Below are positions 14,272 to 44,629 of a DNA stretch of 64,000 bases, piece after piece. The DNA comes from Macrostomum lignano (lineage: Eukaryota): assembly GCA_002269645.1 (NCBI GenBank), contig NIVC01000438.1, forward strand, positions 349,379 to 413,378. Direction: 5' to 3'. The first letter of the stretch is position 1, and the number at the start of each line of letters is the position of its first letter. The position numbers were made by a program, and so were the translations under genes. The notes under the pieces are model-generated. The model searched no databases. It was not told the DNA's origin and worked only from the letters and a program-made list of their open reading frames with translations.

Positions 14272-14478
14272 CACTGGCCAGCTGAAGCCGAAGCAGGCGG
14301 GCCTCACAGAGCAGAGCTCGGCGCATTCCAACCTGCCGAGACCTGGCGCCGACTCCATGGCAGCTGGAGCCGAGATGCTGTGCAGTTTTACGGCAGCAAA
14401 CATGATTTGGGATGTCGTGACTGCCGAGAATGCGAGTCCAGACAGAGACAGCAGCAGAAGGAGCGGGCCTTGCCTCAT
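14272..14478 (-). pseudogene. Lectin unit A: signal peptide + 3'-truncated PAN-like exon, no F-lectin exon
   Basis: MRQGPLLLLLSLSGLAFSAV...ECAELCSVRPACFGFSW, then an abrupt switch to a cagtggtgtcgaaac...poly-G element. Confidence 0.8.
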
Positions 14479-15356
14479 GTCTCAAGACTTGCTGTGTAGC
14501 AGGGCTGATGGAGACTTGTGCATGGCCAAACTTCACTGCGTGTCTCCTTATAAAAATTGCATCCAAGCCCTAATGGAAGCCTAGCTAATAGCGGGGCAGT
14601 CGAACAGGAAATTGAAACGATGCGAAAGCAAACAAAAGAGTTTCACGCTCTACCGGAAGTGTTTACCGGAAGCGTCAGAGAAAGTCAGCTTCATGGGATG
14701 TTGGCTTAGTCTTAAATTTTATTCATGCATGAATGATAAATCTTCTATCGGGAGGAGGAGCTACTATGCATGATGCATTATGGCATACCCTGGTAGCTTT
14801 TGAATTCTAAAAGCGATGCCTAATGTATCTTTTTTTCACTACATTTAGAAACTTTTTTGCTTTGAATATTGTCGGAACAGCAACTTTTACCCAGGATGAT
14901 TGACAAGCAAAGGCGATGAGAAAAAAATCAACGGGGCCGTGAAAAACATCATTTGGTCTGTGTCTAAGCTCATTTGGTCTGTTGGAAAATAAGATTTTCT
15001 TTGGCAGCCTACTTCTTCGTTTCGGTTAGGGTTGCGGTTTCTGGTTGCGAGTTCGAATCTTCCACTGAGCTCGGCAAGGACCAACTTTTTCCAGAATCGG
15101 TCCGACTGTCACTACCGACTTGCAGTCAACCAACTGTCTAGGATGTGCCTCGCCTCACACTTGTTTGCTACCCAATTTGTACGGTTGGTTTAGTTGCTGC
15201 AGATTCGAGCTCGTGACTTAAGCGGCGCACGCTCGTATGCCAAATTTGAAATAAACTTTCCGTAAAATAGCGTTTAAAGAAGTAGAGTTTAGAATGGATG
15301 TGCACATTTTTGTGAAAATGCTGATAACGGTTCTGCGAAAGTCTGCAATAGCGTGA

Positions 15357-15432: not shown

Positions 15433-16164
15433 CAGTAATTTGGGGCTAAAATCGAATCTCGGCTTGGCTCGATCTGCTCGTGCAACTAACGCCCTTAAGG
15501 CCGGCCAACCCTCAAGGCACAATGAAGTGTACATGTGCTTGTGCGTGTGACTGCGTATGTATCAGTGCGCTTGTGTGCCTACTTAGGGGAGTCAGCGCAA
15601 TGGGCAGTAATGCCTCTCGCCGGTTGTGTGACAATGTCGCTTAAACTGCGCCAGGGTGCACACAGCCCCTGCCAAAAATCATAGCGTGCCTGCATTTACA
15701 TGTGCGAGCGTATGTAGAAGCTGCTAGATATGCAATTTCCTCAAATTGTATGCAAACAACAATATCAGCTGGTTATGAAGCCTTACTTGTTTGTACTTGT
15801 CAAACAGTTCCTGGTTTGTCAAGACCCACCACCCTAAAAAGAAATTAAAGCACAAAAAAGTAGAAACAATGTCTATATATCAATGGGGTGAATTCAGAAA
15901 TTCAAGCCCAGGGAGACCGGTTTGGCATATGAGCTACCGTATACAGGGCAAACATAGCAAGCAGCTTTCTTTGACACCGACTTCGAACAAATTATGCTAG
16001 GACAATAGCCAATTGGATCCCGGACATTGTTTGTCTTCACTTCTTTTTCCATTTCGTATTCGACTTTCTTAGTCTTCACTCACGAATAGATTTTTACTAG
16101 GAGAAACACAGCGAAGATTTTCCACAAGTCTCAATCAACCCAGGTGCGAGGTAAGTCTTGAAAC

Positions 16165-16857
16165 ATGAGGCAATCCACTCCTGCTGCTGTCTCTGTCTGG
16201 ACTCGCATTCTCGGCTGTCATGACATCCCAAATCATGTTTGCTGTCGTAAAAGTGCACAACATCTCGACTCCAGCTGCCATGGAGTCTGCGCCAGGACTC
16301 GGCAGGTTGGAATGCGCCGAGCTCTGCTCTGTGAGGCCCGCCTGCTTCGGCTTCAGCTGGCTGCAGGGTCTGTGCCGGCTCTTTGACTGGCTGGCGTTCA
16401 GCAGCCCGGATGGCTGGCAGGTCTCGGAGTCATGCGACGTGTACACCATGACTATAATACGTAAGTATATTGATTGCATAGTTGTTTAAGAAATGAAATC
16501 AAGTGACAGAAACTCGATGACGCCATTGCAACTCAACAGGACCCGTCCAGCCCAGCCTTGCTGGCTGCAACCAGAGCTCCACAAGAGGCGGATTCTGCGA
16601 ACGAGCTATCGATGGAAACAGGGAAACAGGGACCAAATCTTCATGCATCTGTCCTGAAGCAATGCCGACGACGATGTCGTCGGATTGGTGGGAGGGGTAG
16701 CTGGCCGCTCCATCGCTTGTCTCTTACGTCACCATCTACAACAGGCAGGACTGCTGCACTGAGTGACTCAACAAATTCTCGCTGCAGGTGGACGGCGTCG
16801 AGTGCAACCGAGTGAGCCTGACGGTGCCGTTCTCCGTGGCCAACTTCAGCTGCCTTT
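16165..16857 (+). pseudogene. Lectin unit B (inverted copy): PAN exon + F-type lectin exon, disabled
   Basis: 5-nt deletion in the signal peptide relative to unit A (frameshift); donor gtaagt at 16461; lectin exon has a frameshift after AIDGNR and in-frame stops (WWEG*LAAPS, DCCTE*LNK). Confidence 0.85.
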
Positions 16858-18062: not shown

Positions 18063-18477
18063 TCTTAAGTTAAAGTGGTATGAATACGTAAAAAGAACAT
18101 TGGGTATGCGAGCTTTTATATATCCTATATTAATTATATCCCATATTTATTATACTTAGTCTATAGACACGAAATACCGCTTAAGGAGGGAGCTCACACA
18201 AACGTACGAGGAACCCCCCCCCCTCTTGCAAAGCGGCACCGGACTCACGACCCGGTGCAACTGTTTAAACAACATTCAAGTGAACTGCTCTCTGGTGAAG
18301 GTCGGGCGGTTGCAGCTTGGGCGGCTCTATGCTTAACAGCAATAACAGGGTCAAAGAGTTGCAGCCATCAGATTTAAGTGGACTGAAGATTGCCACGCCT
18401 CAATATGGCAAAAGGCGAAGCAAGATAAGACAAGATTGCCGAAAGCGTGGCATGTATAATCAGCCACTGATAATGGC

Positions 18478-18625
18478 TCACTCGGTTGCACTCGCTGCAG
18501 TTCATGCGCAAGGAGAACTCGTTGAATCGGCCAGTCTGTTATAGATGGTGACGTAAGAGTAAGATACAAACGATGGAGCGGCCTGCTGCGCCTCCCACAA
18601 TTCGATTTGGATTCTGCCTTGCGTC
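18478..18625 (-). pseudogene. Lectin unit C: partial F-type lectin fragment
   Basis: Decayed WWEGQ..APSFVS..YVTIYN..ECNRV homology with indels. Confidence 0.75.
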
Positions 18626-19068
18626 CTTAAGGTAGAATAAAAAATTACTTAATCAATTTCGAGATGATATCTCTAGAAATCTACCGATTAAGAGAAGCAA
18701 CCTGATTCAGTGTAGTGGAGCGATGGCCCTTCTCCATCAGCAGCCCGCTTTATGGATCAAATTGAAAGTATCCACACGGAACATCGACACGAAGGGCTTC
18801 AAACTTATAAAATATGTCAGTGCTGTTTGATTTGAAAACCGATTCGACTTGCTAAATGCTTTTTGGGGTCCCATAAACTAAAAAGCAAAAATACTTAAAC
18901 TTCCAATCTGCAAGGCATACTCATTTTTGAATGCTTGAAAGTTTCTGCAGAAGGTTCTTAAACTTTTATTGATTGCTCCTGTTTTCATATCACGGCCGTT
19001 CAGTTTCTCAAAATTACAGCTTGCAGTTCCATTCTGCAGGTCGCTGAGGCCATTCGCCACCAGCTCAG

Positions 19069-19889
19069 CTACAGCCTGTAAGCCTCGATCTCGCAAATGG
19101 TAAGGTACCCGGTGCGCAGGTTCGTCACCCGAACTTGTCTACCGAAGGCGTTGCAGCTAAAGTTGGCCACGGAGAACGGCACCGTCAGGTTCACTCGGTT
19201 GCACTCGACGCCATTCACCTGCAGCGAGAATATTTTTAGCCAATTAGTGCAGCAGTCCAGCCTGTTGTAGATGGTGACGTAAGAGACAAACGATGGAGTG
19301 GCCAGCTGCCCCTCCCACCATTCGAACGGGTTGTTTTCAGTGTGGGCGCAGGAATCTCCATAGTAGTCTTGGTTCCTGTTTCCGTCAATTGCTCGTCCGC
19401 AAACGTTCGACCCGTGCGTTGAACTCTGCGAGCAGCTTTCGAGCTTCAGCTGAGTTTGTGGCTGTGAGTCTGGAAGTTATTTGCGGTCAAAATAATGTTA
19501 CCACGAGCTTAATTGTCGCGTTCAATTTAGGCACACTATAAATTTGCACAGAGTGAATTAGTCAAGTTCCTAATACTAGTGCATAACATCTTACCGACAA
19601 TCCTGGTGTACACGTCACATGACTCCGATGCCTGCCAGTCATCCGTGCTGCTGAACGCCAGCCAGTCAAAGAGTCGGCACAGACCCTGCAGCCAGCTGAA
19701 GCCGAAGCAGGCGGGCCTCAAAGCGCAGAGCGTGGCGCAGTACATTGAATCTCTGCCAGGCAGGGTCTCCATGGCAACTGGAGTCGAGTTGCTGCGCAGT
19801 TTGACTGCCATGAATTGGATGTGGATGCTCATGGCAAACGAAACTTCCCATGTAGAGCATAGCAGCAGCAGCAGCAGAATTAGCTTCAT
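19069..19889 (-). CDS. Lectin unit D: secreted PAN-like + F-type lectin protein (intact; exons 19889-19595, 19469-19069)
   Basis: Signal peptide MKLILLLLLLCSTWEVSFA; CATLC...C.GFSW..GLC.L PAN core; phase-1 GT-AG intron; AIDGNRNQDYYGDSCAHTENNPFEWW...YNRLDCCTNWL...CEIEAYRL*. Confidence 0.9.
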
Positions 19890-21101
19890 CTTTAGCTAGC
19901 AGAAGCTGCAGGTGTCAGTGTTCAGTTTCACGTCGATTTTAAGAGTTGAGGTTTTTTCGTAGTGTGCGACGTCTATGATTATTGGCACGCTCTATCCCTC
20001 TTCCAGACTAGGCAAGCCGCTTGCTTCATTTTGACTTTGCCCATGCATGGAAGCATGGCCGTGAGTTTGCTCTACAAAGAAGGAAGATACACCAGCTAGT
20101 TAGTGTGAGATTGGCGGGCTGTCTTGCTGTGTAAACGACAGGTCACGAGAAAAATGTTTTTAGGCTGACTACATTTAATGGGTGCAAAGCTTTTAGAAGG
20201 AACAAGCAAATTTTTAACTGTCAAATATTATTGGTGACAGCCGTGCGCGGGGTTTTTGTCGCCATGACGACGGATACTCAACAAAAGCAATGGGAAGCGG
20301 CAGAAGTAGATGAAATATCTTGTATTGAGTATGAGTATTTAGTAATTCGCTAAACTATCTGCTGTGAGTAATAGAGTGAATAAAACTGTATCAGATTTAT
20401 TGAAATTCGAAGCCAATATTGCTTTAAGTCTACCCAGTGAAAGGTAGTTGCTGTTTTAAGAAACACCCCTGTTTGGCCAATCGAATTACCGCTGACATTT
20501 TGAAACTAATGCGTAAATCTCCGTTTCCTAGGCGCCAATCCTGACAAAGTGATCAAAGTTAATGGGCGCAGAGTTGAATACCACTGTCTATAGCATCAGA
20601 CAACACAATAAAACGCACGTTGCTCAGATCGACTCCGAGTTTCTCTAACCATTGACCAACTCAATATAAAAGACACGTGCATAAACTACCGACATCACTA
20701 GCCGCAAACAGATTTAAAGGAGTTACACGACAGCACGGACTGCAGCTACCTGGTCAGGCAGAAACTGTCGAAAATTACAGAGTTACAATCTACTGTTGCA
20801 TTACGGTCAATACTCGTACCTTTGAATTAAGCATTTTGCAAGTAGGAAATTTTGCAGCAAGAACATTCAGACCGGTACTTCGAAAACTGCCGCTTAGAGA
20901 CTTGAAGCTATTATACTTTTTGACGGTCCAAATATCATCAGACATACTGCCTAAATGAAATAATACTGCCCAGATTTAACAGTTGATTTCTACTCTGCAT
21001 GCTTGATATATTTGATAAACGTGTTTTCTATGATCTTCGCGTTAGTTACAATGCTGCCTTACTGTTTTGAGTTCTTTGAGTTGACATCGAGACGAGCTCA
21101 G

Positions 21102-21503
21102 CTACAGCGTGTAAGCCTCAATCTCGCAAATGGTCAGGAACTGGCTGAGCAGGTTTGTCACCCGAACTCGGCTGCCGAACGAGTCGCAGCTGAAGGTTGG
21201 CCACGGAGAACGGCACCGTCAGGTTCACTCGGTTGCACTCGACGCCATTCACCTGCAGCGAGAACTCGTTGAGACAGCCAGGGCAGCAGTTCTGCCTGTT
21301 GTAGATGGTGACGTAAGAGACAAACGATGGAGCGACCATCTGCCCCTCCCACCATTCGAACGGGTTTTTATTGGTGCGAGAGCAGGCACCTGAGTATGAG
21401 TCTTGGTTTCGGTTTCCGTCTACTGCCCGGCCACAACGGTAAGGACCCAAGGTTGAGCTCTGCGTGCAGCCATCAAAAGATAGACGATTTGTTCGCCGCA
21501 ACT
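21102..21503 (-). pseudogene. Lectin unit E: orphan F-type lectin exon with a +1 frameshift and no PAN exon
   Basis: Acceptor ttccag intact; exon is 402 nt versus 401 in intact copies (extra C in gccaacCttcagc); binding residues altered (ACSRT, RQNCCPGC). The single indel could be an assembly error. Confidence 0.75.
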
Positions 21504-22649
21504 CTGGAAGTGACAGTCATACTTTTGCTTGGAGATTTAGAGATTTAAATGAATACACTCGTAATTGTACAGCTCACGGATTTTCGACAGGCTCCACTTT
21601 TTAACAGCCGCGTACATGCTTTGCGTCGCCATGACAACCGAAAGGCCGAACGCAAACAATAGAAAAAGCAGCAGGATTGCCCTCATGGTTTACTAGAAAT
21701 TTTGATCAGTTGCTCCATGCGAGTCATTTTTGGAAATCATCGACACTGCTATATAACGGGGGAGGGGTAGCCATTGAAGCAAGCAAAGTCATTGGCTGAA
21801 ATATATAATATGTTGTACCTCTTGTTGTCCGCAGAATAACTCAACTTCCTGTGGGTGAGGCGGCTCAAATCTGAAGTCTTTGATAGTAACGTCGGGTAGT
21901 TGTGCTGCCAGCAGACTTTCCTTCGGGTCTCAGTATCCAATGAGGTGAGGGCCCCAACAGAACGGAGAAATAGCTAACGAAGACGGACGAATTGAGCACA
22001 CCGTCCAAAATTGCAACTCCAAACCACCACCTAGTCAGCAGACCCTCGTCGGTTGTCTAGGTTTCGAATGGGAACTGAGTCACAACAAGCAGTACAATCG
22101 AGGACTCTTAAACAGATACTCGAGGATGAGAAAGCGGAAGGAAGACAATTTACGGAAACGAGCCTGATGGGGTCCGGATTTCTAGACCGAGGAGCTGATT
22201 GCGCAAGTGCCAAGCATGATATCACGTGAGAAACTCACGTGGTATCTATTTTGAGCAACTGATGTCAATTACATGGCTTATAAGGCAAGGGCGCCGAAGT
22301 CCGTGAGCTCTGCCATAAACAAGTTTCCAGGAAAAGCCCAGAAAAAAGGCTTATCACGTGACTAGCTCACATGACAAGGAAAAAGTGAGCCACTTGTGAA
22401 TCTACATAATTCAAAGCTTGGACTGCGATAAGTCTAGAGAACCCAGGGCGTTTAAAACAAAAATGGCGGGTTGGAATAAAAATGCTTGTGATGGATGCAG
22501 CTTGAGTTTATCTTATTGAAAGTAAAAGTGTAAATGTTATCCTCAATTTGCAGACTCCACGTTTACAGACTGCTCAAATTCGACAATTGATAAAAGTCTT
22601 ATATAACTTTTTATTCATACGAGAATTACCAAAAATTTGTCTAAAGAAT

Positions 22650-23900
22650 TGAATATCTTGTAAAAGCGACAAAATTGTTTCTGGCTGCATTCTTGCCTGA
22701 AAAAGCTAGCAATGGATTGGTTCCACTTCAGCATTTCTGACAGCAGTGACGCTTGCATCACCTGTACGCGTACTTACAGCGCATGGCGGTGCTCTAAATT
22801 ATTGCTGTGTTTTTGCAGCAACGGCTTTCACCCGTTATTCAATGGCCTAAATCGCAGATTGGGAGCTGCTCTGAGCAAACACAAGCGAGAGCGCAACAGG
22901 ATGCGGTCAAGCATCGCGACAAAAAACGTTTCGATGACAGTTTTAATTCCCTCATCTTGGCATTGCCGAGGCCTCTCCATAACAACTTCAACAAGCCCTT
23001 AAGTCCCGCTTCCACTGCGCCCTTGAATCAGGCAGATGCTTTATGAGATCATCTTTGCTCGGCTTAAATTTCTTTTAAAAACTATTTGATGAAGGCAACC
23101 ACTGTCGCAGTGCCATCCAGAATCATTTCCAAGAAGTGAAACTCGTTCTAGGATTGGTAAAAGCTCCGCAATTCATAGATCTGTTTGACTTCACTTTAAC
23201 CTTACTCAAAACCTTCTCGGAAGCAGGTCCTCACCGCACCGCAGCCAGCCCTGGAGTATGTATAAGACAACATGGTATGTCTGGCAGGTTAGTCTGGTGT
23301 CACAAGTTCTGTCATTAAAACACCTGGTGACAGGGCTGCGGGTCACTTGAATAACTGAAGTGGAAGAACCCTACACAACAGTTTCTTGGAAATGAGCCAG
23401 AGTCTGGTAAGGAACGCATATTTGTCGTATCATTACTGCGTTTGGTATGCTCTCGAGAATGCGGTTTCGGTTTCGGTACGACAGGCCGGCCTCTCCAGCT
23501 CATTTCTAAGAAATTCGAGTGTTAAATTCTTATTCGTGAGTTCTTAGTTTTAAATATGGATTTCTGTTCTTTGGTGATTGAAGTTTATTAAACTCTGCAC
23601 GGCGCGACACAGAATGTGTTTTCGTTCATGTAACAATGTGGGATTGACTAGATGCCAAAATACCCGAAAATCCGTTGCACAGCTTTTGATGCAAGTGCCG
23701 CTAGCGCACTGCAAACTTGCTGGACTCTTTGTGTGCTTGAGATTAGAGATTGGGATTGGGATTTTGGACTGAGACAGAGACCAAAACTGTACACGCAATA
23801 CTGCAGCCAAAATAGTGATCTCAACGGCAAGCAGACATTGTGGACTGTCGTATCGACCGGTGAGCACTCAATTTCCGCGTTACTCCCTTCCGACTCACGT
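22650..23900 (-). mobile_element. Possible decayed DNA-transposon (hAT-like transposase) remnant
   Basis: Broken reading frames with weak resemblance to hAT motifs (RTCDTRLTCQ; IETFFVAMLDRIL); interrupts the lectin array. Not verified. Confidence 0.25.
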
Positions 23901-24082
23901 ATCCATGCGTAAACGGTAAACTGGATAGTGAAATGGACAAGGGTCACCACATAAGCAGAGTCAATTCTATTTAGGAAGTCAATAGAGATTTTCAAACTTT
24001 CATCAGTGTTGCTTTAATCTTCTAATTTCAATATAATTGAAATTTCAATATTCATCACTGCTGACTTGCAATAACAGCTTGC

Positions 24083-24891
24083 TTAGTAGAGAGTATAGGC
24101 CTCAAGCTCGCAAATCGTTACAGGAAGTTTACAAAGGTTAACAACTCGAACTCGTCTGCCGAAGGCGTTGCAGCTGAAGTTGGCCACGGAGAACGGCACC
24201 GTCAGGCTCACTCGGTTGCACTCGACGCCGTCCACCTGCAGCGAGAATTTGTTGAGTCGCTCAGCGCAGCAGTCCTGCCTGTTGTAGATGGTGACGTAAG
24301 AGACAAACGATGGAGCGGCCAGCTGCCCCTCCCACCATTCGAAGAGGTTGCGGTCCGTGTGGGTGCAGGACAAATCATTAAAATAGTTTTGGTTCCTGTT
24401 TCCGTCGATAGCGTGCTTGCATAATCCGCTGTATATAAAGGCAGTGGAGCTCTGATGGCAGTCAGCAAAGTTCAGCCGTTTCAAGTCTATAAGAGCCATG
24501 TTGATGGAGGAAGCAGGTTGACTTGATCAGGTCTCGTGTGAGTAACAGCTCTATAAGCATATCATCAGAGTGAACAGCAGTTTTTACCTTTTGGCCCGGT
24601 GTACACATCGCATGACTCCCAGACCTGCCAGCCATCCGTGCTGCTGAACGCCAGCCAGTCAAAGAGTCGGCACAGACCCTGCAGCCAGCTGAAGCCGAAG
24701 CAGGCGGGCTTCACAGAACAGAGCTCGGCGCATTCCAACCTGCCGAGTCCTGGCGCCGACTCCATGGCAGCTGGAGTCGAGATGCTGCGCATTCGAACTG
24801 CCGAGTACACCATTGGCGTCTCCATGACAACAGAAACTGCGATCGCAAAAAGAATTAGCAGTAGAAGTAGGCGTTTTTGGCGCATTTCCAA
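24083..24891 (-). CDS. Lectin unit F: secreted PAN-like + F-type lectin protein (intact; exons 24891-24588, 24486-24083)
   Basis: In-frame phase-1 join; AIDGN motif and canonical H-x26-R-x-D-x4-R (SCTHT...RQDCCAER). Confidence 0.92.
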
Positions 24892-25947
24892 GTTGAAAAC
24901 CTAATTTGTAAGGAACAGGCTACTTTTATCTCTTTGCTCTTGTCTCAAGCACTGACGAAATCTAGTTCCTTTTTATTCTAGTGTCCTTTAGTCTCGACCA
25001 CACACCTGAACTCAAAACTCAAGCTGTATTCCCATGGACGCCTCAAAAATACGATTCAGTGTGCGTGTGCTGAAAGTGGAGACTTTTATCTTTAAGGCAT
25101 CACCTTTCTTGCTTAATACCCTATTGTAGCTTCTGCATCTCAAACTAGTGGTAGCCGTCAAATTTCAAATTGGCAGCTCTTGAACTCAGCATAAAACACA
25201 CAGGCTGTAGAATCTAATTTAGCGAACAGGTGCACAGGCTCTTTGATAGCCCCTGTGGGAATTTTCTATCTGGGACCGTTACCATAGCCAGTCATGGTTT
25301 GCCAGGTTGACGGGCTGCATCTCATCCCATGTATTGGGAGAAGCTGGAGCAGGTTGAGCAGGTTGAGCAGCTGGGATATTGCGCTGCATTGGATAAGATT
25401 ATCAAAGCCAGGTAAAGTTTCAGTCATTTTTTAAAGCCATCGTAAGATAAGATCGTTCTTAGCTCCTATCTTCGTAGTGTAAAAGTTCCAACGTACGACC
25501 GAACTTACGCTTACGACAGCTTTATCTTGCGACCCCAAAGAGCTTTACGCTCGTATATTTATGGTCATAGCAAAGCAAACCTTTCCTGGAAACTGTACTT
25601 GCTTGAAGTTAAAAGGCAGAATTGGTGCGCCCACCTTTAACTGGAGGTTGTGCGATGGCGTTCCCGGAGGCTCTGAATTAGTTTAAGAATTCAGTGGAAA
25701 AAGAGGTTAAGAAGCGACTGCCTGAAAGTTGCTAGCGAAAGTCTCGAAGCCGAAGACCCTACCCCTTACACTGCGGAGCCTCTCTAGTCTTTCGGATTTC
25801 AATACTGGTGGAAACTCGTACAGTCAATTATTTTAATGTGTCAATCGGGATTCTCAAACTGTCAGCTATGTTGCTTTTATTTTCTAATTTCAATATAATT
25901 CTTCCTCTGCTTTTATATTCGCAACTGGCTCGCAATAACTTCCTTGG

Positions 25948-26290
25948 TTACAGCGTATAATCCTCAATCTCGAAAATCGTCAAATCATTGTAGTGCAGAC
26001 TGTCCAGAGACTCTTCATAAAGATGAACAACCTGAAACTCGGCTGCTGAATTGGCGTTGCATCTGAAATTGGCGCCGAAGAACGAATCCGTCAGGATCAC
26101 TCGGTTGCACGCGACGGCGTTCAAGTCCAGGGAGAATTCGCTGTGTCGGCCAGTCTGCTTTGGTCTGTTGTCCTGCCTGTTATAGATGGTGACGTAAGAG
26201 ACAAGCGATGGAGCGGCCAGCTGCTCCTTACAAAATTCGATTTTGATTTGGCCTTTTGGTTTGGCTCCTGTTTTAGTCGATTAGCAGAAC
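25948..26290 (-). pseudogene. Lectin unit G: promoter/5'UTR fused to an internally deleted F-type lectin exon
   Basis: APSLVSYVTIYNRQD and CEIE-like C-terminus recognisable with indels; upstream 26330-26570 matches the promoter block of units D, J and K. Confidence 0.75.
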
Positions 26291-26726
26291 CTGGTGTTAG
26301 CGTTTCAGTGTCCAACATCAGCGGAAGCAAACGGTTGCTTTATAGAGGTGAGGTTTTCTCGCGAGGAGCGACACTCCCTGATATTTCGCTCTTCCAGACT
26401 GGAGAAGCCGCTTGCCTGATTTCCAGAGTTTGCCTGTGGAAGCATGGTCGTGAGTTTGCTAAAAAGGAGGATGCACAGCTAGCGAGTGTGATTGGCGGGC
26501 TGTCCTGCTGTGTAAACGAAAGTCACGCGAAAAATATTTTGAAGCTTGCAGCAAACATCTAATGTGTGCACAAAGGGCCTGTCAACTTAAGCTCATAAAG
26601 CGGAGCCCGAGTAACCTATTGATTGCTCCGGTTTTCATTGCAGCAGTACAGTTTCTCAAATTCACTGCTTTCAGTTCCATTCAGCAGATGCACTCGAGGT
26701 TGCCGAGGCCATTCGCCACCACCAGT

Positions 26727-27555
26727 TCAGCTAAGCGTGTAAGCCTCGATCTCGCAAATAAACAGGTACAGACTGCGTACGCTGACTCGAACTCGGCTGC
26801 CGAAGGCGTTGCAGCTGAAGTTGGCCACGGAGAACGGCACCGTCAGGCTCACTCGGTTGCACTCAACGCCGTCCACCTGCAGCGAGAATTTGTTGAGCCG
26901 CTCAGCGCAGCAGTCCTGCCTGTTGTAGATGGTGACGTAAGAGACAAGCGATGGAGCGGCCAGCTGCCCCTCCCACCATTCGAACAGATTTTTTCTGGTG
27001 TGGGCGCAGGAATCTCCATAGTAGTCTTGGTTCCTGTTTCCGTCAATTGCTCGTCCGCAAACACCCAACCAAGACGTTGAGCTCTGCGAGCAGCTTTCGA
27101 GTTTTAGCCAAGTTGGCGGCTTCGGGTCTGGAAGTTATTAGCGGTCAAAATACCTGTTCCACGACTGCCACCTTTAAAAACTTGAGCAATATGAATAATG
27201 CACACCATGAATTCGTATAGAGTTCTCAGTGCTTGGTGTATGCCGTCTTACCGACCATCCTGGCGTACACATCGCATGACTCCGAGACCTGCCAGCCATC
27301 CGTGCTGCTGAATGCCAGCCAGTCAAAGAGCCGGCACAGACCCTGCAGCCAGCTGAAGCCGAAGCAGGCGGGCCTCACAGAGCAGAGCTCGGCGCACTTC
27401 ATCCTGCCGAGTCCTGGCGCCGACTCCATGGCAGCTGGAGTCGAGATGCTGCGCATTCGAACTGCCGAGTACACCACCGGCGTCGCCATGACAACGTAAA
27501 CTCCGATCGCAAAGAGAATTAGCAGTAAAAGTAGGCGTTCTTGGCCCATTTCCAA
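26727..27555 (-). CDS. Lectin unit H: secreted PAN-like + F-type lectin protein (intact; exons 27555-27252, 27127-26727)
   Basis: In-frame phase-1 join; canonical H-x26-R-x-D-x4-R (SCAHT...RQDCCAER). Confidence 0.92.
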
Positions 27556-28419
27556 GTTGAAAAGCTTTAGTTTGTAAGGAACAGGCTACTTTTCTCTTTC
27601 CTCTTATATTATGGGAACTTGCAAAATCTTCCCTTTTATCTTCAATGGCCTTGAGTCTTGGCTACACACCTGGACTAAAACTCATGCTTTATTCCAAGAT
27701 GTCTAAAAAATTCCGCTTGCTGAAAGTTGAGGCTTTTTGCTTCCAAGCATCAAATTGTCGCTTCATTTCTTTTTTCGGCAATGCATCTCAAATTCGTGAT
27801 AGGCTGAATTCAAATTAGCAGCTCTAGCACTCAGCATCAAATTCTTAGGCAGGAGAAAGTAAACAAGGTAGCGAACAGAAATTCAGTCATGACTCTTTGA
27901 TAGCCTCGTGGGAATTCGGGGACGACAATTAGCCTGGCGCCAGTAAATAACTTTGAGGGGGGCATTGAAACTGCACAGTAGCATCAGGGGCAAATAGGCA
28001 ATATTTCTGATTGAGGGACACGTCTCAGGGGGGGGGGGCAAGCCTGCTGGAATGGAGGCGCCACATGCTTTGCCAGCCGATTGGGGGGGGGGGAGGAGGT
28101 TAGCATAATTGGTGAGCCCACCTTTAACTGGAGGGGTTGTGCGATGGCGTTCCCGGAGGCTCTAAATTAGTTTAAGAATTCAATGGGAAAATCCAAATTT
28201 TATCAGTCATTTCTGTGTCAGTTTATCTGTATAAGAAACTGTTTATGAACGAACTGGGCCACTGCTTGCTCAAGTGGGCTGGTTAAGAAGTAGTGTCTTT
28301 TGGTTTATATACTGGTAGAAACTTATGCACGAGTCAATAGGGATTCTCAAACTGTCATCTATGTTGCTTCAATTTTCTAATTTCAATATATTTAATCCTC
28401 TGCACTCGAATGAAAATCA

Positions 28420-28535
28420 TGCAGTCCTGCCTGTTGTAGATGGAGACAAAAGATACAAGCGATGGAGCGGCCAGCTGCCCCTCCCACCATACCATTTGGA
28501 TTTGGCCTTCAAATTTAGCTCATGTTTTTGTCGAA
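28420..28535 (-). pseudogene. Lectin unit I: short F-type lectin fragment
   Basis: WWEGQLAAPSLVS...IYNRQDC, then sequence breaks off. Confidence 0.75.
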
Positions 28536-28984
28536 AGCGTAGAATAAAAATATAATGATCATTTGACTTACTCGAGATGACATCTCTGAAACTCTCCGAT
28601 GAGAAGTAACTCGATTCACTGGAGTGGAGCGGTGGCTCTTCTCCATCAGCAGCTGTGATTTATGAATGAAATTGTAATCATCCACACAGCCTGAGGATTA
28701 AGAACTTCCAAGTAATAAATAAATATCAGTGCTGTTCAATTAAAAACCGAGTCATGGCTAGCCAACAGCTTTCTGAGGTCTCACACCCAAAGCAACAGAA
28801 ATCAATACTTTCTAATCGCAAAGCATAACTCATTTTTTGAATGCTTGAAGGGATCTAAAAAAATATTTCAAGTTTATTGGTTGCTCTGGTTTACATCACA
28901 GCCATTCAGTTTTTCAGATGACATTTCTGCAGTTCCATTGTGCAGATGCACTCGAGGTCGACGCGGCCATTCGCCACCACCAGT

Positions 28985-29811
28985 TCAGCTAAGCGTGTAA
29001 GCCTCGATCTCGCAAATAAACAGGTACAGACTACGTACGCTGAATCGAACTCGGCTGCCGAAGGCGTTGCAGCTGAAGTTGGCCACGGAGAACGGCACCG
29101 TCAGGTTCACTCGGTTGCACTTGACGCCGTCCACCTGCAGCGAGAATTTGTTGAGTCGTTCAGCACAGCAGTCCTGCCTGTTGTAGATGGTGACGTAAGA
29201 GACAAGCGATGGAGCGACCAGCTGCCCCTCCCACCATTCGAACGGGTTGTTTTCGGTATGGGTTCAGGACAAGTGCATGTAATCTTGGTTTCTGTTTCCG
29301 TCAATTGCTCGTCCGCAAACGCTCGAGACGATCGTTGAGCTCTGCTTGCAGCTTTCGAATTTTAGCTGAGTTTAGGGCTGAGTCTGGAAATTATTTGCGG
29401 CCAAAGTACTACTAATTGCACCAGGAGCTTGTCAATAAACTATAGGATTATTAATGCTCATAAATAATTTACACCGAGTGAATTAGTCAAGTTCCTAATA
29501 CTGGTGCATGACCTCTTACCGACAATCCTGATGTACACATCGCATGACTCCGAGGCCTGCCAGCCATCCGTGCTGCTGAACGCCAGCCAGTCAAAGAGCC
29601 GACACAGACCCTGCAGCCAGCTGAAGCCGAAGCTGGCGGGCCTCAAAGCGCAGAGCGTGGCGCAGTTCATTGAATCTCTGCCAGGCAGGGTCGCCATGGC
29701 AACTGGAGTCGAGGTGCTGCGCAGTTTGAGCACCTTGAATTGGAGTTGAACGCTCATGGCCAACGAAAATTCCAACGCAGAGCAAAGAAAAACCAGCAGA
29801 ATTAGCTTCAT
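28985..29811 (-). pseudogene. Lectin unit J: full-length but disabled PAN + F-type lectin gene (exons 29811-29520, 29383-28985)
   Basis: Three independent lesions: PAN Cys to Ser (RPASFGF), 2-nt deletion at the start of exon 2 (399 vs 401 nt), and TGC to TGA at the SCxHT cysteine. Confidence 0.88.
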
Positions 29812-30508
29812 CTTAGCTAGCAGAAGCTGGTGTCAGCTTTTCAGTGTTTCAGCGGAAGCAAACGGTTGATTTATAGAGCATAGACTTTTCCGCAAGGAGC
29901 GACAACTTTATTGATTATTGACACGATATTTCGCTTTTCCAGACTGGAGAAACCGCTTGCTTCATTTCGACTTTGCCTGTGGAAGCATAGCCGTTAGTTT
30001 TCTCATCAACAATGAAGGAAGATACACAGCTAGTGAGTGTGATTGGCGGGCTGTTTTGCTGTGTAAACAAGCCGCGCGAAAAATATCTTGATGCTGGAAA
30101 CATCAAATGTGTACACAATTTCGATGTCTCAGCTTTTAGGCAAAGTGAAGCAAGATTTTAACTGTGAAATATTAACTGTGACAGCCGTGTTTAGGCTTGT
30201 TGTCGCTATGTTCTATGACTTCCAACTATGTATAAATTGTCAGCTTTTTTCATCGAAAATGAGTCATGACTAGCCAACTGCTTTATGAGGTCCCATACGT
30301 AAAGCAACAAAAATCGAAACTTCCAAGCCGCAAGACATATCCATTTTCGAATGCTTGAAGCTTCCTTCAGTCACAGAAGACTTAAAGTTTTACTGATTGC
30401 TCCGGTTTCCATTGCAGCAGTTCAGTTTCTCAAATTCACTGCTTTCAGTTCCATTCTGCAGTTGCAGTCGAGGTTTCCGCGCGAGGCCACTCGCAACCAC
30501 CAGCTCAG

Positions 30509-31327
30509 CTACAGCCTGTAAGCCTCGATCTCGCAGATGCCCAGGTACTCGTTGAGCAGGTTTGTCACCCGAACTCGGCTGCCGAAGGCGTTGCAGCTGA
30601 AGTTGGCCACGGAGAACGGCACCGTCAGGTTCACTCGGTTGCACTCGACGCCGTCCACCTGCAGCGAGAATTTGTTGAGCCGCTCAGCGCAGCAGTCCTG
30701 CCTGTTGTAGATGGTGACGTAAGAGACAAGCGATGGAGCGGCCAGCTGCCCCTCCAACCATTCGAACAGATTTTTTCTGGTGTGGGAGCAGGAGCCTGCA
30801 CGGTAGTCTTGGTTCCTGTTTTTGTCAATTGCTCGTTCACAAACGCCAAACCAAGACGTTGAGCTCTTCGAGCAGCTTTCGAGTTTTAGCCGATTGTGCG
30901 GCTGCGGGTCTGGAAGTTATTTGCGGTCAAAGTACCTGTTCCACAAGCTTTCCATCTAAAGCTGAAGCAATATTGCATAATATGAAATCGTAAAAGTAAA
31001 TTAGTAAAATTCCTAATGCTTGGTGTATGTCGTCTTACCGACCATCCTGGTGTACACATCGCATGACTCCCAGACCTGCCAGCCATCCGTGCTGCTGAAG
31101 GCCAGCCAGTCAAAGAGCCGGCACAGACCCTGCAGCCAGCTGAAGCCAAAGCAGGCGGGCCTCACAGAGCAGAGCTCGGCGCACTTCATCCTGCCGAGTC
31201 CTGGCGCCGACTCCATGGCAGCTGGAGCCGAGATGCTGTGCAGTTCGACTGCCATGAACTGGATGTGGACGGTCATGGCAAACGGAACTCCTAATATAGT
31301 GCACAGCATCAGAAGAATGAGCTTCAT
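30509..31327 (-). CDS. Lectin unit K: secreted PAN-like + F-type lectin protein (intact; exons 31327-31039, 30909-30509)
   Basis: In-frame phase-1 join; AIDKNRNQDYRAGSCSHT...RQDCCAER...CEIEAYRL*. Confidence 0.92.
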
Positions 31328-32508: not shown

Positions 32509-35500
32509 TCAATATGTAAACATTGGAGCTTGCAATCGGCTCAGGATGAGCTTCTTTTGAAAGTTGAGCAAATCGATGCGCTGCTTCAGGCTGTGAATGC
32601 TCGCCTCCTTCTCTTGGCGGAGCACCTGCAGCCAGTCGAAGCTGCTCTGCTGCTGCTGCTCCTGGCCTGTGCCAACTGTGGGGCGTCGAATGGTCGATTG
32701 GGACTGGCTGTTAAATAGAAATTAACTCCAATCTCCCTCTCTGCCCTCTCACTGTCTCTACCCTGTCTCATCTACCTTTTCTCAGTCTCTACCCTGTCTC
32801 ATCTACCTTTTCTCGGTCTCTACCCTGTCTCATCTACCTTTTCTCGGTCTCTACCCTGTCTCATCTACCTTTTCTCGGTCTCTACCCTGTCTCATCTACC
32901 TTTTCTCGGTCTCTACCCTGTCTCATCTACCTTTTCTCGGTCTCTACCCTGTCTCATCAACCTTTTCTCGGTCTCTACCCTGTCTCATCAACCTTTTCTC
33001 GGTCTCTACCGTCTCTCTGTCTCTACCCTGTCTCATCTACCTTTTCTCGGTCTCTAACGTCTCTCAGTCTCCAACCTCCTCTCATCTATCCTCTCTCAGT
33101 CTCCAACCTCTCTCATCTATCTTCTCTCAGTCTCCAACCTCTCTCATCTATCCTCTCTCATCTATCCCCTCTCAGTCTCTACCCTCTACCGTCTCCACCC
33201 GCTATCAGTCACTACCCTCTACCCTCTCCACCCGCTATCAGTCGCTAGCCTCTCCACCCGCTATCAGTCGCTAGCCTCTCCACCCGCTATCAGTCGCTAG
33301 CCTCTCTACCCGCTATCAGTCGCTAGCCTCTCCACCCGCTATCAGTCGCTAGCCTCTCCACCCGCTATCAGTCACTACCCTCTACCCTCTCCACCCGCTA
33401 TCAGTCGCTAGCCTCTCCACCCGCTATCAGTCGCTAGCCTCTCCACCCGCTATCAGTCGCTAGCCTCTCTACCCGCTATCAGTCGCTAGCCTCTCCACCC
33501 GCTATCAGTCGCTAGCCTCTCCACCCGCTATCAGTCACTACCCTCTACCCTCTCCACCCGCTATCAGTCGCTAGCCTCTCCACCCGCTATCAGTCACTAC
33601 CCTCTACCCTCTCCACCCGCTATCAGTCGCTAGCCTCTGTACCCTCTCCGGTCTCTAATATCTCAGTCTTTTACTCTTTTTCTGTCACTCCTCTCTCAGC
33701 CTCTCTGTCTCTATCCTTCTTTAACCTTCCCAGCTCCGTATCAATAATATCTCTTAACGTGTTAAAATCCAATCTATTAATTTTGCCACCGCTTCCCTCT
33801 CCATATAATTACCATCCCCAAACCAGTCATCTCAGTTCCTCTGCTTGTCCTGGCTGCGCATCTTTCATTTTTCAACTACAATCTTCTCATTTCAATCTTC
33901 ATCACCCGTGGTTACCATTTCCTCCTCCGCCGCCCCGGCCGGCTCCGGACATCTTGGCTAGGAGATCAGCTGACTCAGCTTCCTGCTGCTTCAGAGCCGC
34001 CGTCACCACCTGCAATTTCGCTTCAGTGCCGCGCAGCTCCTCCAAGTAGGTGTCCGGATCGAATCCTCGGACAGCTCGGACGGGTGCGTCCGCCGAAACA
34101 CGCGGCAGCGGCTGACCCAACGGTGGGAGCCTCGTGCCAGCTCGGGGCGTTTCGCCGTTGCTACCCGGGTCGCTGCCACCAGCTGCGGCGTCCTCGGTGA
34201 TGAACGCTGGCGGCCCGTGGCGTGATGACTGCGATGGGTGGTTGAAGATCTGGAAGATCTGCTTTTTTTCTTGATAACTCTCAAAGTCACGCATTCACTG
34301 TTTCAGTCACTCATTCACTACTTCAGTCACTCATTCACTGTTTCAGTCACTCATTCACTGCTTCAGCCACTCATTCACTGTTTCAGTCACTCATTCACTG
34401 TTTCAGTCACTCATTCACTGTTTCAGTCACGCATTCACTGTTTCAGTCACTCATTCACTGTTTCAGTCACTCATTCACTGTTTCAGTCACTCATTCACTG
34501 TTTCAGTCACTCATTCACTGTTTCAGTCACTCATTCACTGTTTTAGTCACTCATTCACTGTTTCAGTCACTCATTCACTGTTTCAGTCACTCATTCACTG
34601 TTTCAGTCACTCATTCACTGTTTCAGTCACTCATTCACAGCTTCAGTCACTCATTCACTGTTTCAGTCACTCATTCACTGCTTCAGTCACTCATTCACTG
34701 TTTCAGTCACTCATTCACTGTTTCAGTCACTCATTCACTGTTTCAGTCACTCATTCACTGCTTCAGTCACGCATTCACTGTTTCAGTCACTCATTCACTG
34801 CTTCAGTCATTCATTCACTGCTGTCACTCATTCACTGCTTCTATCACTCATTCACTGCTTCAGTCACTCATTCACAGCTTCAGTCACTTTTTCACCGTTT
34901 CAGTCACTCATTCAGTTACTACTCGTACATTATGATACTACTACCTATTCCAACCATCGGTAACTCCAAGACTTACTTCAAACCCACGATCGGTTCCGTA
35001 GCTCGCAGACGGTGGCCGTGCGGGCACTACGATCTGCTCAAGATAGCGGCCGCTGGATGCCTCTTGGAACCTTGAGCTGGCAATTGGGGGTGCGGCAATG
35101 GCCAGTAGGGGCTGCTGCTTCTGCTGCTGTTTCTCTTGCCGGACCACGGGTCGTCTGCGCCACTCGTCTAGAGCGGCCTCCTGCTCCCAGTAGCTGTCAA
35201 CTCGCTGCTGCAGGTAGTGATCGTCCCTGGCTGACAGGTAGTTGTTTACCATGCCGCCGAAGCGTTTGGGAAATGCTGGGGCCACCTGTTTCAGGGCGAA
35301 ATTAGGAATTGGTAAAGGTGATAATTAAATCGCTTATTAGGTTATTGAGCCGTGAACTATCAAATAGAAAAATGAATAAGTGAATGGAGTAGTATTTGGG
35401 TGACTTAAGTGACTAAATGAGTGATTAATCTGTGAATGAGTGAATGAAGCAGTGAATGAGTGACTGAAGCAGTGAATGGGTGACTGAAGCTGTGAATGAG

Positions 35501-38500
35501 TGACAAAAGTAGTGAATGGGTGACTGAAGCAGTGAATGAGTGACAAAAGTAGTGAATGAGTGACTGAAAGTGTAAATGAGTAAATGAAGCTGTGAATGAG
35601 TTGCTAAAATAGTGAATGAGTGGCTGAAACAGTAAACGAGTGACTAAAATGTGAATGAGTGACTGGAACAATGATGAGTGATTGGAGTAGTGAATGAGTG
35701 ACTAAAGTAGTGAATGAGCGACTAAAGTAGTGAATTAGCGACTAAAGTTGTGAATGAGCGAACTAAAGTAGTGAATGAGCGACTTAAGTAGTGAATGAGC
35801 GAACTAAAGTAGTGAATGAGCGACTTAAGTAGTGAATGAGTGACTGAAGTAGTGAATGAGTGACTGAAGTAGTGAATGAGTGACTGAAGTAGTGAATGAG
35901 TGACTGAAGTAGTGAATGAGTGACTGAAGTAGTGAATGAGTGACTGAAGTAGTGAATGAGTGACTGAAGTAGTGAATGAGCGACTAAAGTAGTGAATTAG
36001 CGACTTAAGTAGTGAATGAGCGAACTAAAGTAGTGAATGAGCGACTTAAGTAGTGAATGAGTGACTGAAGTAGTGAATGAGTGACTGAAGTAGTGAATGA
36101 GTGACTGAAGTAGTGAATGAGTGACTGAAGTAGTGAATGAGTGACTGAAGTAGTGAATGAGTGACTGAAGTAGTGAATGAGTGACTGAAGTAGTGAATGA
36201 GTGACTGAAGTAGTGAATGAGTGACTGAAGTAGTGAATGAGTGACTGAAGTAGTGAATGAGTGACTGAAGTAGTGAATGAGTGACTGAAGTAGTAAATTA
36301 GTCACTAAAGCAGTGAACGGATGTACAACAAATCTGTGGGTCAAAAAGACCTTGATTGGCTCTCCGTGAACCCTGAGCTGGTCCTCCCACCGTCTCGGCT
36401 CCTGCTGCTGTCGCTGTCGCTGCCGCTGACTGCCGCGCAGCCTCCGACCTCTCAGCATCCCGCCGTCTTCATCATCATCAGCAGGGGCAGTAGGCTTGGC
36501 CTCCGTCACCCTGCCGTACCGGTACGAAAGCAGAGGCTGCAAGAAGTCGATTTCCTGGCCGTCCAGGTGCACCCGGTGCTCCAGCTGCCAGTCCTCCAGC
36601 TGCTCCAGAATCGGCCGCAGTCCGAGCAGGGAGTTTTCTAAGAAGCTGAGCACGTGCCAGACCTTGCGATGCGGCTTCACCTCCTCTTTGCCGAATGGCT
36701 TCGGAGCGAATCGCCTCTGGTCGCCCTCCTCCTGTACGGAGTTGATGAAGATCTTCGCGGTGTTGGCGGCGTTGATAACGGATTCCAGCTGCCGCTGGTG
36801 CTGCTTGTCCTGGCTGAAGTACAGGTAATAATACCTGTAGATCGGCTTCAGAATCTCGGACGTGATGGCGTTGTGCACGTCACGGAGACGGTAGAACTGG
36901 TTGAGCAGGACTATGAGGCTGTCGAAATCGGAGTCGTTTAGAAATACTTGAGCTCTGGCTTGGCCTCTGAAATGATCCGTGATTGGCTAGATTAGCAATC
37001 CATTCTATTCCAATTGATTTGTGATTGGCTAGATTAGCAAGCCATTCTATTCCAATTGATCTGTGATTGGCTAGATTAGCAATCCATTCTATTCCAATTG
37101 ATCCGTGATTGGCTAGATTAGCAATCCATTCTATTCCAATTGATCTGTGATTGGATAGATTAGCAATCCATTCTATTCCAATTGATCTGTGATTGGCTAG
37201 ATTAGCAATCAATTCTATTCCAATTGATCTGTGATTGGCTAGATTAGCAATCCATTCTATTCTTATTGATCTGTGATTGGCTAGGTTAGCAATCCATTCT
37301 ATTCCAATTGATCTGTGATTGGCTAGATTAGCAATCCATTCTATTCCAATTGATCTGTGATTGGCTAGATTAGCAATCCATTCTATTCCAATTGATCTGT
37401 GATTGGCTAGATTAGCAATCCATTCTATTCCAATTGATTTGTGATTGGCTAGATTAGCAATCCATTCTATTCCAATTGATCCGTGATTGGCTAGATTAGC
37501 AATCCATTCTATTCCAATTGATCTGTGATTGGCTAGGTTAGCAATCCATTCTATTTCAATTGATCTGTGATTGGCTAGATTAGCAATCCATTCTATTCCA
37601 ATTGATCTGTGATTGGCTAGATTAGCAATCCATTCTATTCCAATTGATCTGTGATTGGCTAGATTAGCAATCCATTCTATTCCAATTGATCTGTGATTGG
37701 CTAGATTAGCAATCCATTCTATTCCAATTGATTTGTGATTGGCTAGATTAGCAATCCATTCTATTCCAATTGATCTGTGATTGGCTAGATTAGCAATCCA
37801 TTCTATTCCAAATAATCCGTGATTGGCTAGATTAGCAATCCATTCTATTCCAATTGACCTGTGATTGGCTAGATTGGCAACCCATTCTATTCCAATTGAT
37901 CTGTGATTGGCTAGATTAGCAATCCATTCTATTCCAATTGATTTGTGATTGGCTAGATTAGCAATCCATTCTATTCCAATTCACCCCTCACCCAGCAACA
38001 GCTCACCTGCAGTTGAGAATGACAATAATGTCATGCAGGGTGTCAGCTTTTCTCCATGCTTCTGCATGAAGTAGCGGTCGCAGCGCTTGAACACGGTGTC
38101 ATAGTGAGCGAAATTATCTCGCAGGTGTTCACCGATGGAGTCCAGCGCCTCCAGCAGGGTGCGCCAGTTCCTCTCAACCGCGTGCAGCTTCAGCATGGTT
38201 TCCTGACTCAGCCTCACGTGGGTTTCTGTTGTCTTTCTCGCTGCTGCGAAAGCTTCTTTTAAAGTCACGAGTCATCATCAACCCACCGAGAATCTTAAGC
38301 CCGATAATTAAGCAAACAAACTCAGATGCTACCTTCCACTGCTTCGGCTCATAAGCATTACGAGCCGCCCAGATTTACTCAAATATTGACTTTTAATCAT
38401 TTTATTTGCTTTGAGATGCTTCTTGTGCTGAATTTCTACCTCTTAGTGAGCTTATATGATGAGAAAAGTTAGTACACTGGGTTTTAATGAATTTCATAAA

Positions 38501-39814: not shown

Positions 39815-40051
39815 ACATTTCCCAAGCCTGAACTACTACTAGTAGGTTAAAAGTACATTTACTCAGCAATTTGCTCTGTCAGTCAACAATCGAAAATTGA
39901 TGACAAAAAAGTGCCCTAACCTTGATCGCGTGATGTAATTATAAACCTTTAAATTATAAATAATTCTCTCTTAGAGCTATATGATATTTTTATGCAAATC
40001 AAATATCAGATGACTTCCTGTTGACAGTGAGTTGACAGCCAAAAGCGTAGC

Positions 40052-40102
<51 letters not shown>

Positions 40103-40419
40103 AAGAAAGGGATCCAAATTTCAAATTAGCAAGCTGAAAAGTTACTTCTAGAAGAAAATAATAAAAACGGGGTCAGCTGAAAGCAGCTGGGGGATAGAAG
40201 GGGGATTGTGAAGGAAAGTGGAACGGGGGCGTGGGCCGCGAGCGGGAAGAGGTGATGACTGAAAATGGCGGATGGAGTTCCAAAGTTGGATAAGGCAAAG
40301 CTGGACTGCTGCAGGAAATAGCTGGGCGCATGAAGGACGAGAGGGTACTGAAAAATAGAATAGAGAGATGATGGAAGCGGTAGGAGAGGTGGGGAGGAGC
40401 GAAAAGGGAAAGGAGAATG

Positions 40420-44275: not shown

Positions 44276-44629
44276 TCTCCCTGCCTTCTACCCTGAACTT
44301 CCAGCCAGTCTTACTCAAGAAACATGGCGGGCGCTCATTAAAACTAAAAAACCTGAGAAGCTGCCACAGTTGAAAACGTGAGGATTTGAGAAAAGTAGTT
44401 TAAAAGGTCTTTAATTAGAGACAATAAACTGCAGAACCAGACCGCAGTATTGAAGTTCAATACTGCGCTAACCAGAAAAAAACTAACATTCGTTACCGTG
44501 ACAAGCACGAAAGTGGAGTGATAGTCTGAGGCACTGACTGAGTCCATTAAATAAATTAAATAAAATTTATTGAACTCAAAAACTTTTGCATTAATTTAAT
44601 CATTTACTTTGTCGCCTGTTGTCTTAGAG

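Follow-up and report, generated by a model that had tools for sequence, protein, structure and literature searches.

We analyzed a 64,000-nucleotide stretch of the Macrostomum lignano genome (GenBank assembly GCA_002269645.1, contig NIVC01000438.1, positions 349,379 to 413,378 of the forward strand; hereafter the window, in whose coordinates positions are given) that carries a tandem array of lectin genes whose copies are mosaics of one another. A tblastn search with one copy as the query revealed 11 related units at 14.3–31.4 kb, 10 of them on the minus strand and one, unit B, inverted. The array comprises four intact genes (D, F, H, and K) and seven pseudogenes or fragments (A, B, C, E, G, I, and J) in 17 kb. 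The original prediction, made from the sequence alone, had placed the family at 19069-31327; its first position, 14277, falls outside this range. A complete unit consists of two exons and a phase-1 GT..AG intron of 101–136 bp. Exon 1 codes for a hydrophobic leader and a cysteine-rich domain of approximately 70 aa, exon 2 for a linker and a domain of approximately 125 aa. Each of the four intact genes has its own start codon, leader, and 5' flank, and the pseudogenes are interspersed among them. The individual units are as follows:

Unit A, 14277..14557, minus strand: exon-1 fragment, pseudogene, inverted partner of B (tblastn)
Unit B, 16090..16853, plus strand: pseudogene with several in-frame stops (tblastn)
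Unit C, 18393..18620, minus strand: degenerate exon-2 fragment upstream of D (tblastn)
Gene D, 19069..19889, minus strand: intact, 231 aa; exon 1 at 19595–19889, intron at 19470–19594, exon 2 at 19069–19469
Unit E, 21092..21656, minus strand: pseudogene; a 1-bp insertion causes a frameshift in exon 2, exon 1 is degraded
Gene F, 24083..24885, minus strand: intact, 233 aa; exon 1 at 24588–24885, exon 2 at 24083–24486
Unit G, 25951..26255, minus strand: degenerate exon-2 remnant
Gene H, 26727..27549, minus strand: intact, 232 aa; exon 1 at 27252–27549, exon 2 at 26727–27127
Unit I, 28421..28534, minus strand: short exon-2 fragment upstream of H
Unit J, 28985..29811, minus strand: pseudogene; exon 2 has lost 2 bp at its start, and the SCxHT motif is interrupted by a TGC>TGA stop
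Gene K, 30509..31327, minus strand: intact, 229 aa; exon 1 at 31039–31327, exon 2 at 30509–30909

Several of the decayed units closely resemble other members of the array. Unit A matches B in inverted orientation (87% identity over 281 bp) and also matches F, H, and K (94–95% over 108–111 bp). The framework of B is 96.5% identical to that of H, exact matches of 83–89 nt connect B to H and F, and B resembles F in its intron and backbone. Unit I matches H over 70 bp (94% identity) and G over 111 bp (82%), and a remnant of the D/J/K-type 5' flank lies beside G at 26282–26573. On the plus strand, antisense open reading frames (ORFs) of 132–172 aa extend over lectin exons (26562-27080, 28940-29338, and 26143-26562); most likely, these ORFs arise simply because the coding sequence is rich in GC and poor in stops.

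Judged by domain and structure searches, the array genes are secreted PAN/apple-like plus F-type (fucose-binding) lectin genes of M. lignano. Exon 2 matches the Pfam family F5_F8_type_C_2 (E = 1e-11), and sequence matches in the PDB include striped-bass FBP32 (4e-27), eel agglutinin 1K12 (6e-11), pneumococcal fucolectin-related modules, and the lectin domain of lectinolysin. The alignment to 1K12 contains no gaps over the His52/Arg79/Arg86 triad, the AIDGN cation motif, and the vicinal cysteines (CAHT...YNRQDCCAER). The top 11 PDB matches of a Foldseek search with an AlphaFold model of moderate confidence (mean predicted local distance difference test score, pLDDT, of 65) were all F-type lectin domains, including 2J22, 1K12, lectinolysin, and FBP32 (E = 1.6e-6 to 5e-5), with TM-scores, normalized to target length, of 0.52–0.66 and of 0.34 for the two-domain FBP32. 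The lectin domain dominated the Foldseek results also where a PAN/apple fold was sought. For exon 1, the match to PAN_1 (E = 0.003, 17.7 bits) lies under the Pfam cut-off of 21.4 bits; the PAN-like domain has four invariant cysteines, its relatives are annotated as 'Apple domain-containing protein', and one of them, P0001, carries a precomputed PF00024 match. All close protein relatives are from M. lignano, and full-length relatives with the PAN plus lectin architecture (about 220 aa) are few; the lectin domain alone has thousands. A dispersed paralogue, P0009 (L001:10001-10657, L001 being contig NIVC01001584.1), is intronless, in contrast to all array genes, in which an intron separates the PAN and lectin exons; it may represent a retrocopy or the ancestral form.

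The gap-free 1K12 alignment, together with a review of F-type lectins (PMC5712786), also provided the numbering of the binding-site loops, designated complementarity-determining regions (CDRs). SSTSWLGVC corresponds to CDR1, NQDYYGD to CDR2, and RQDCCAER to CDR4; RKNLFE follows His52 (post-His loop). The two aromatic positions of CDR2 correspond to Phe45 and Tyr46, the residues that make up the fucose-methyl pocket in eel agglutinin (PMC5712786). The predicted fucose-binding motif, i.e., His followed by Arg-x-Asp-x4-(Arg/Lys) with the spacing of His52/Arg79/Arg86 in eel agglutinin, is complete in F, H, and K. In D (RLDCCTNW) and likewise in its relative P0004 the last basic residue is replaced by Trp, so that the triad is incomplete, and the motif of E is altered (RQNCCPGC). 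The cysteines equivalent to Cys50, Cys82–83, Cys108, and Cys124 are invariant. The cation-binding motif of F-type lectins is described as h2DGx (PMC5712786), and AIDGN is present in the array; K and its near-twin P0003 have AIDKN instead, as well as EWLEG instead of EWWEG. The variants of K (AIDKN/EWLEG) and D (RxDCCTNW) both recur in a second annotation, which makes functional variation more probable than decay.

To compare the copies, we aligned the nucleotide sequences of units D, F, H, J, K, E, and B with MAFFT and calculated sliding-window identities; the alignment of the exons is free of gaps. The nearest neighbor of a unit shifts along its length, and all shared blocks named in the original prediction were recovered at the DNA level. 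H shares its leader with F, plus about 100 bp of 5' flank, with 85–100% identity at columns 101–250 as opposed to 40–60% to D, J, and K. H and K are 98% identical in the middle of exon 1, including an exact match of 79 nt (H 27440..27362 = K 31227..31149), and also share the intron, the linker/CDR1 region, and RKNLFEW. The DYYGDSCAHT block of H is that of D, with which it forms an exact match of 65 nt (D 19404..19340 = H 27062..26998). The C-terminus of H is that of pseudogene J, and the similarity includes the stop codon and the start of the 3' untranslated region (UTR), with 98% identity over 26863..26712 and an exact match of 68 nt (H 26774..26707 = J 29032..28965). The leader of K is of the D/J type and switches between 31243 and 31233 (chi2 = 67, p = 0.001), its middle has an exact stretch of 46 nt in common with A and contains a short A-like patch (LHSISA), and D carries ENNPFEW as in J and the C-terminal EAYRL directly before the stop as in K. 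Exact matches thus amount to 65 nt for D–H, 68 nt for H–J, 74 nt for F–H, and 79–108 nt for H–K, in units that are 80–88% identical overall. Beyond the genes, H and K have their 3' flank in common, and F and H their 5' flank.

Segments were assigned by copying-model painting. H was the most mosaic copy, with six segments from four relatives, and its D-like and J-like tracts are each bounded on both sides by K-like segments. The painted segments, all of units on the minus strand, are listed below:

H, 27597–27441: F-like, 92%
H, 27440–27064: K-like, 90%
H, 27063–27005: D-like, 98%, CDR2 cassette
H, 27004–26864: K-like, 99%
H, 26863–26712: J-like, 98%, C-terminus with stop codon and 3' UTR
H, 26711–26620: K-like, 94%
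D: J-like 19945–19451, H-like 19450–19342, J-like 19341–19316, K-like 19315–18960
F: H-like 5' flank and leader 24931–24757, B-like 24756–24407, H-like framework 24346–24141, own 3' end
J: D-like 29832–29244, H-like 29243–28930
K: D/J-like 5' flank and leader 31440–31243, H-like 31242–30576, D-like C-terminus 30575–30504, H-like 3' flank 30503–30404

The exchanged blocks had been described as loop cassettes. Loops are indeed exchanged, but so are the leader, the intron, and untranslated sequence.

Formal tests of exchange agreed with the painting. The pairwise homoplasy index (PHI) over all sites yielded z = −20.7 (p ≤ 0.0005), and it was also significant within exon 1 (z = −6.4) and within exon 2 (z = −5.6), both of which can be aligned unambiguously. 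Applied to polymorphic sites, a GENECONV-like test reached a global p of 0.001 in four pairs, H–J, F–H, F–K, and D–H. The 159 informative sites are spatially clustered, with 44 FH|DJK splits at columns 40–239 and a run of DJ|FHK splits at columns 261–317. In neighbor-joining trees of individual segments, H had mutually incompatible partners, namely F in the 5' flank and leader (bootstrap 100%), K around RKNLFEW (99%), D in the CDR2 block (88–95%), and J at the C-terminus (98–99%). Triplet analysis placed breakpoints, each with p = 0.001, in K at 31243..31233, in H at 27441..27402, in J at 29244..29215, and in F at 24757..24738. As a null model, we simulated sequences along the single best tree 100 times, retaining the rate variation observed along the alignment; these gave a PHI z of −0.28 ± 1.09 (minimum −4.3) and a maximum fragment score of 7.7 ± 1.2 (largest 11.3), compared to observed values of −20.4 and 25.9. 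A single tree for all windows, which had been named as the finding that would speak against exchange, therefore does not account for the data: the simulations cannot reproduce the signal, and the incompatible splits have bootstrap values of 88–100%. Segmental exchange by conversion or shuffling, as originally proposed, is thus backed by PHI, the GENECONV-like test, the incompatible segment trees, and the null simulation. We did not take the four-gamete Rm (minimum number of recombination events) of 39 as the number of events, since copies this divergent violate the infinite-sites assumption.

Divergence is distributed unevenly along the copies. Two blocks, the PAN core and the lectin β-sandwich framework, are homogenized. 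In the 62-codon framework (WWEGQL…AFGSR), only 20 of 548 four-fold sites (3.6%) differ among D, E, F, H, J, K, and B; in their introns, the corresponding pairs differ by 23–70%. We used the dispersed paralogue on L001 as the outgroup for silent-site divergence. Its framework shows approximately 85% protein identity to the array, yet differs at 43–55% of four-fold sites, and since the paralogue diverges freely at these sites, the silent-site identity within the array reflects conversion and not protein constraint. The proportion of synonymous differences (pS) between F and K changes 37-fold along the gene (0.37, 0.13, 0.13, 0.81, 0.58, 0.023, and 0.86). Because the tracts span the 5' flank, intron, stop codon, and 3' UTR, and in view of the long exact matches and the uneven pS, convergence at the protein level does not explain the signal. 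In the conserved blocks, pseudogenes A, B, E, I, and J retain 91–96% identity. Framework identities of C and G go down to 72–78% (C, 72–76%), compared to 91–100% for all other copies, and these two units seem to have left the homogenizing exchange.

The most variable blocks map to the predicted binding-site loops, i.e., CDR1, CDR2, and the post-His loop. Loop pS is 0.4–0.8, and the ratio of nonsynonymous to synonymous differences (pN/pS, Nei–Gojobori) is mostly 0.35–0.84 and exceeds 1 in H–K alone, on eight changes. With pN/pS mostly below 1, we do not claim diversifying selection in the loops; by their sequences, they look like old variants that were reshuffled and not like freshly selected changes.

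Taken together, we consider it likely, with a probability of roughly 85%, that the array was shaped by recurrent ectopic exchange between its tandem paralogues in the germline, in the form of gene conversion and unequal crossing-over. Unequal crossing-over would have generated hybrid genes whose 5' and 3' parts come from different types; H would combine an F-type 5' part with a K-type 3' part, and K a D/J-type 5' part with an H-type 3' part. Three observations point to such hybrid genes, namely the pairs C–D and I–J, which form a segmental duplicate of 1830 bp (76.6%), the shared upstream flank of F and H, and the shared downstream flank of H and K, which includes a remnant of the D/J/K-type promoter region. 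On top of these hybrids, short non-reciprocal conversion tracts of approximately 60–300 bp would have carried single blocks between copies, with the D–H CDR2 cassette and the H–J tract of C-terminus and 3' UTR as candidate examples. Conversion would be frequent enough to keep the PAN core and the lectin framework near-identical at silent sites in all active copies and most pseudogenes (concerted evolution), while loops, leaders, introns, and flanks persist as old divergent variants. A loop or other variant would occasionally move as a block when an exchange begins and ends in flanking conserved sequence. The suggestion that framework blocks act as homology anchors fits these data, as the D–H CDR2 patch is bounded by conserved AIDGNRNQ and SCxHT; several other switches lie inside or at the edge of the two homogenized blocks, where silent divergence is near zero. 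The expected product of these exchanges would be a repertoire of lectins with differing loop combinations, such as those of H and K, whose main differences lie in CDR2 and at the C-terminus.

The Chi-like octamer GCTGGTGG occurs at 19057-19064 and 30497-30504 on the minus strand, 5–12 nt past the stop codons of D and K; at the same place, H and J carry CTGGTGGTGG. The octamer was considered as a recombination hotspot and left as a curiosity (11 copies in the window compared to 1.8 expected, five of them in one minisatellite).

Four points weigh against our interpretation. First, H and F, the most striking mosaics, are so far supported by this assembly only. Second, the choice of conversion over reciprocal double crossover depends on tract geometry, because donor and acceptor are not polarized. 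Third, the segment limits for the bootstrap trees were picked after the alignment had been seen, although the global tests are independent of segment choice. Fourth, the loop pN/pS values, mostly within the range given above, do not indicate an adaptive gain from reshuffling.

The first point bears on the question of artefacts. Mis-mapped paralogue reads or chimeric joins during assembly or polishing could have created false tracts and a falsely uniform framework; the tracts of 59–150 bp have the size of short reads, repeats are very abundant in the M. lignano genome (about 20 minisatellite arrays in the window itself), and no independent DNA was found for H or F. Look-ups of exact ORFs (H exons 1 and 2, K exon 1, and F exon 2) and of P0003 in public assemblies gave no match, and no H-type or F-type protein was retrieved among the relatives from the other M. 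lignano annotation. However, with overall differences of 12–25% and unrelated flanks, the copies are too divergent for collapse. Moreover, the mosaics of D and K as well as the frameshift of J recur in proteins of the other annotation: P0004 reproduces the block combination of D (96.8% identity), P0003 that of K with one mismatch and a gap in the gene model, and P0013 and P0001 read the same shifted frame as J. The combination of DYYGDSCAHT and ENNPFEW is also found on a third backbone, P0005. Finally, the mosaic limits also part flank homologies on the kilobase scale (F-type 5', K-type 3', and C–D versus I–J). We therefore regard an artefact as an improbable explanation of the array, and as unlikely for H and F in particular.

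Similarly improbable, in our estimation, is a germline cassette exchange that serves an innate recognition repertoire. Under this explanation, the framework would be kept identical to allow loop swaps, decayed copies would act as a loop reservoir, and somatic exchange would be possible; the cassettes might be CDR1, CDR2, the post-His loop, and the C-terminal strand. If true, the flatworm F-type lectin cluster would be a new invertebrate case of conversion-based receptor diversification. The analogy to such systems, drawn in the original prediction, holds in an evolutionary sense only, as there are at least four intact genes with their own leader and flank instead of one acceptor. Of the proposal that pseudogenes serve as donors, only their participation is supported. 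Pseudogenes A, B, E, I, and J clearly belong to the exchange network, with the conserved-block identities given above, but the H–J transfer fits either direction: the J-like proteins P0013 and P0001 share the C-terminal type that is one codon shorter, and they differ from J in 4 of 23 residues at the C-terminus and in 3 of 79 residues in exon 1, so that the tract can be read both ways.

Even less probable is a dedicated diversification system, in which pseudogenes and fragments form a donor library for the templated, possibly somatic, conversion of expressed lectin genes, comparable to chicken immunoglobulin genes or to what has been proposed for the fibrinogen-related lectins of snails. In favor of it, pseudogenes or fragments make up seven of the 11 units and lie between the intact genes, the identity retained by five of them implies that they are still recombination-competent, intact H and pseudogene J share a 98%-identical tract, and the variable blocks fall on the CDR1 and CDR2 loops of eel agglutinin (PMC5712786). 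However, one expressed acceptor with a bank of silent donors, as in chicken immunoglobulin genes, is not what we found at the array, where no single acceptor locus stands out among the four intact genes. Furthermore, the exchange of leader, intron, and UTR and the ambiguous direction of the H–J transfer argue against it, the loops have old silent divergence with no clear excess of replacement changes, and ordinary germline exchange explains all patterns. The last alternative, that one duplication tree, regional rate differences, and convergent loop selection mimic a mosaic without any exchange, could appeal to the sharp alternation of conserved and variable regions and to lectin loops as plausible targets of selection, but is effectively refuted by single-tree simulations that fall far short of the observed PHI z and fragment score, by the strongly supported incompatible splits, by identical tracts that span silent sites, introns, and UTRs, and by the free divergence of four-fold sites in the dispersed paralogue.

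F-type lectins are recognition proteins in immunity and fertilization. To our knowledge, detailed insight into how animals vary the binding loops of these lectins is confined to oyster bindin. Patchworks created by interlocus conversion, with some segments homogenized and others kept as variants, are familiar from tandem immune and receptor families such as MHC, KIR, and plant resistance-gene clusters. The fibrinogen-related proteins (FREPs) of Biomphalaria glabrata are secreted lectins with tandem and dispersed copies, whose mosaics were attributed to gene conversion; the claim for FREPs is a somatic diversification of the immunoglobulin superfamily (IgSF) domain. Unlike FREPs, the flatworm array is known from germline sequence and involves a different domain. 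Interlocus gene conversion is also described for SIGLEC11/16, where the direction from pseudogene to gene was established (PMC5701461), and for the Gal/GalNAc lectin genes of Entamoeba (PMC3125142). As in these families, the flatworm paralogues form a patchwork in which pseudogenes take part, with folds and organisms being different; unlike the Siglec case, the H–J tract is compatible with both transfer directions.

The nearest parallel among F-type lectins is the bindin of the oyster Crassostrea gigas, which has the same lectin domain. Its diversity lies around the fucose-binding pocket, and recombination makes new domain sequences (PMC5712786). Bindin is encoded by few single-copy genes with one to five internal repeats, recombination takes place in the mid-repeat intron, and alternative splicing and demonstrated positive selection contribute further (PMC5712786). 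In contrast, the flatworm array consists of separate single-domain tandem genes and pseudogenes with the intron between the PAN and lectin exons, and its loop pN/pS is mostly <1. Eel isoforms, i.e., the Anguilla anguilla agglutinin and eFL-1 to eFL-7 of A. japonica, combine a conserved His/Arg/Arg triad with variability in CDR1 and CDR2 (PMC5712786). The flatworm array resembles them in that CDR1 and CDR2 are its most variable blocks and in the presence of multiple isoforms per animal, and differs by the additional N-terminal PAN/apple-like domain. The review gives no mosaic or gene-conversion analysis for the eel genes (PMC5712786), and we found no paper that deals with F-type lectins of Macrostomum or with gene conversion in this class of lectins. 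The proposed process is ordinary, textbook interlocus conversion and unequal crossing-over, and the family is a new example of it. The locus offers a compact and very clean case in a genetically tractable flatworm, and it displays conversion in two roles, with the scaffold homogenized and old loop variants reshuffled. For this and similar tandem families of M. lignano, gene trees, dating, and ratios of nonsynonymous to synonymous substitution rates (dN/dS) need to be calculated segment by segment, as they would otherwise be misleading.

Elsewhere in the window, two ORF pieces on the plus strand (224-718 and 1228-1890) resemble the lambda/beta-like fingers and palm of a family-X DNA polymerase, with Pfam E-values of 2e-5 and 6e-5 slightly under the thresholds and a 32-bp minisatellite (825-1202) between them. 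A single ORF of 501 aa at 49597-51102 on the plus strand matches a G-protein-coupled receptor of the rhodopsin family (7tm_1, E = 4e-7). The approximately 20 long minisatellite arrays are located at 32740-46230 and 55250-63950; their repeat units measure 13–98 bp and occur in up to 125 copies, and some arrays have an extreme GC skew. One of them, at 56560-57390, recurs with about 83% identity on the contig that carries the dispersed paralogue (NIVC01001584.1, L001:990-1780).

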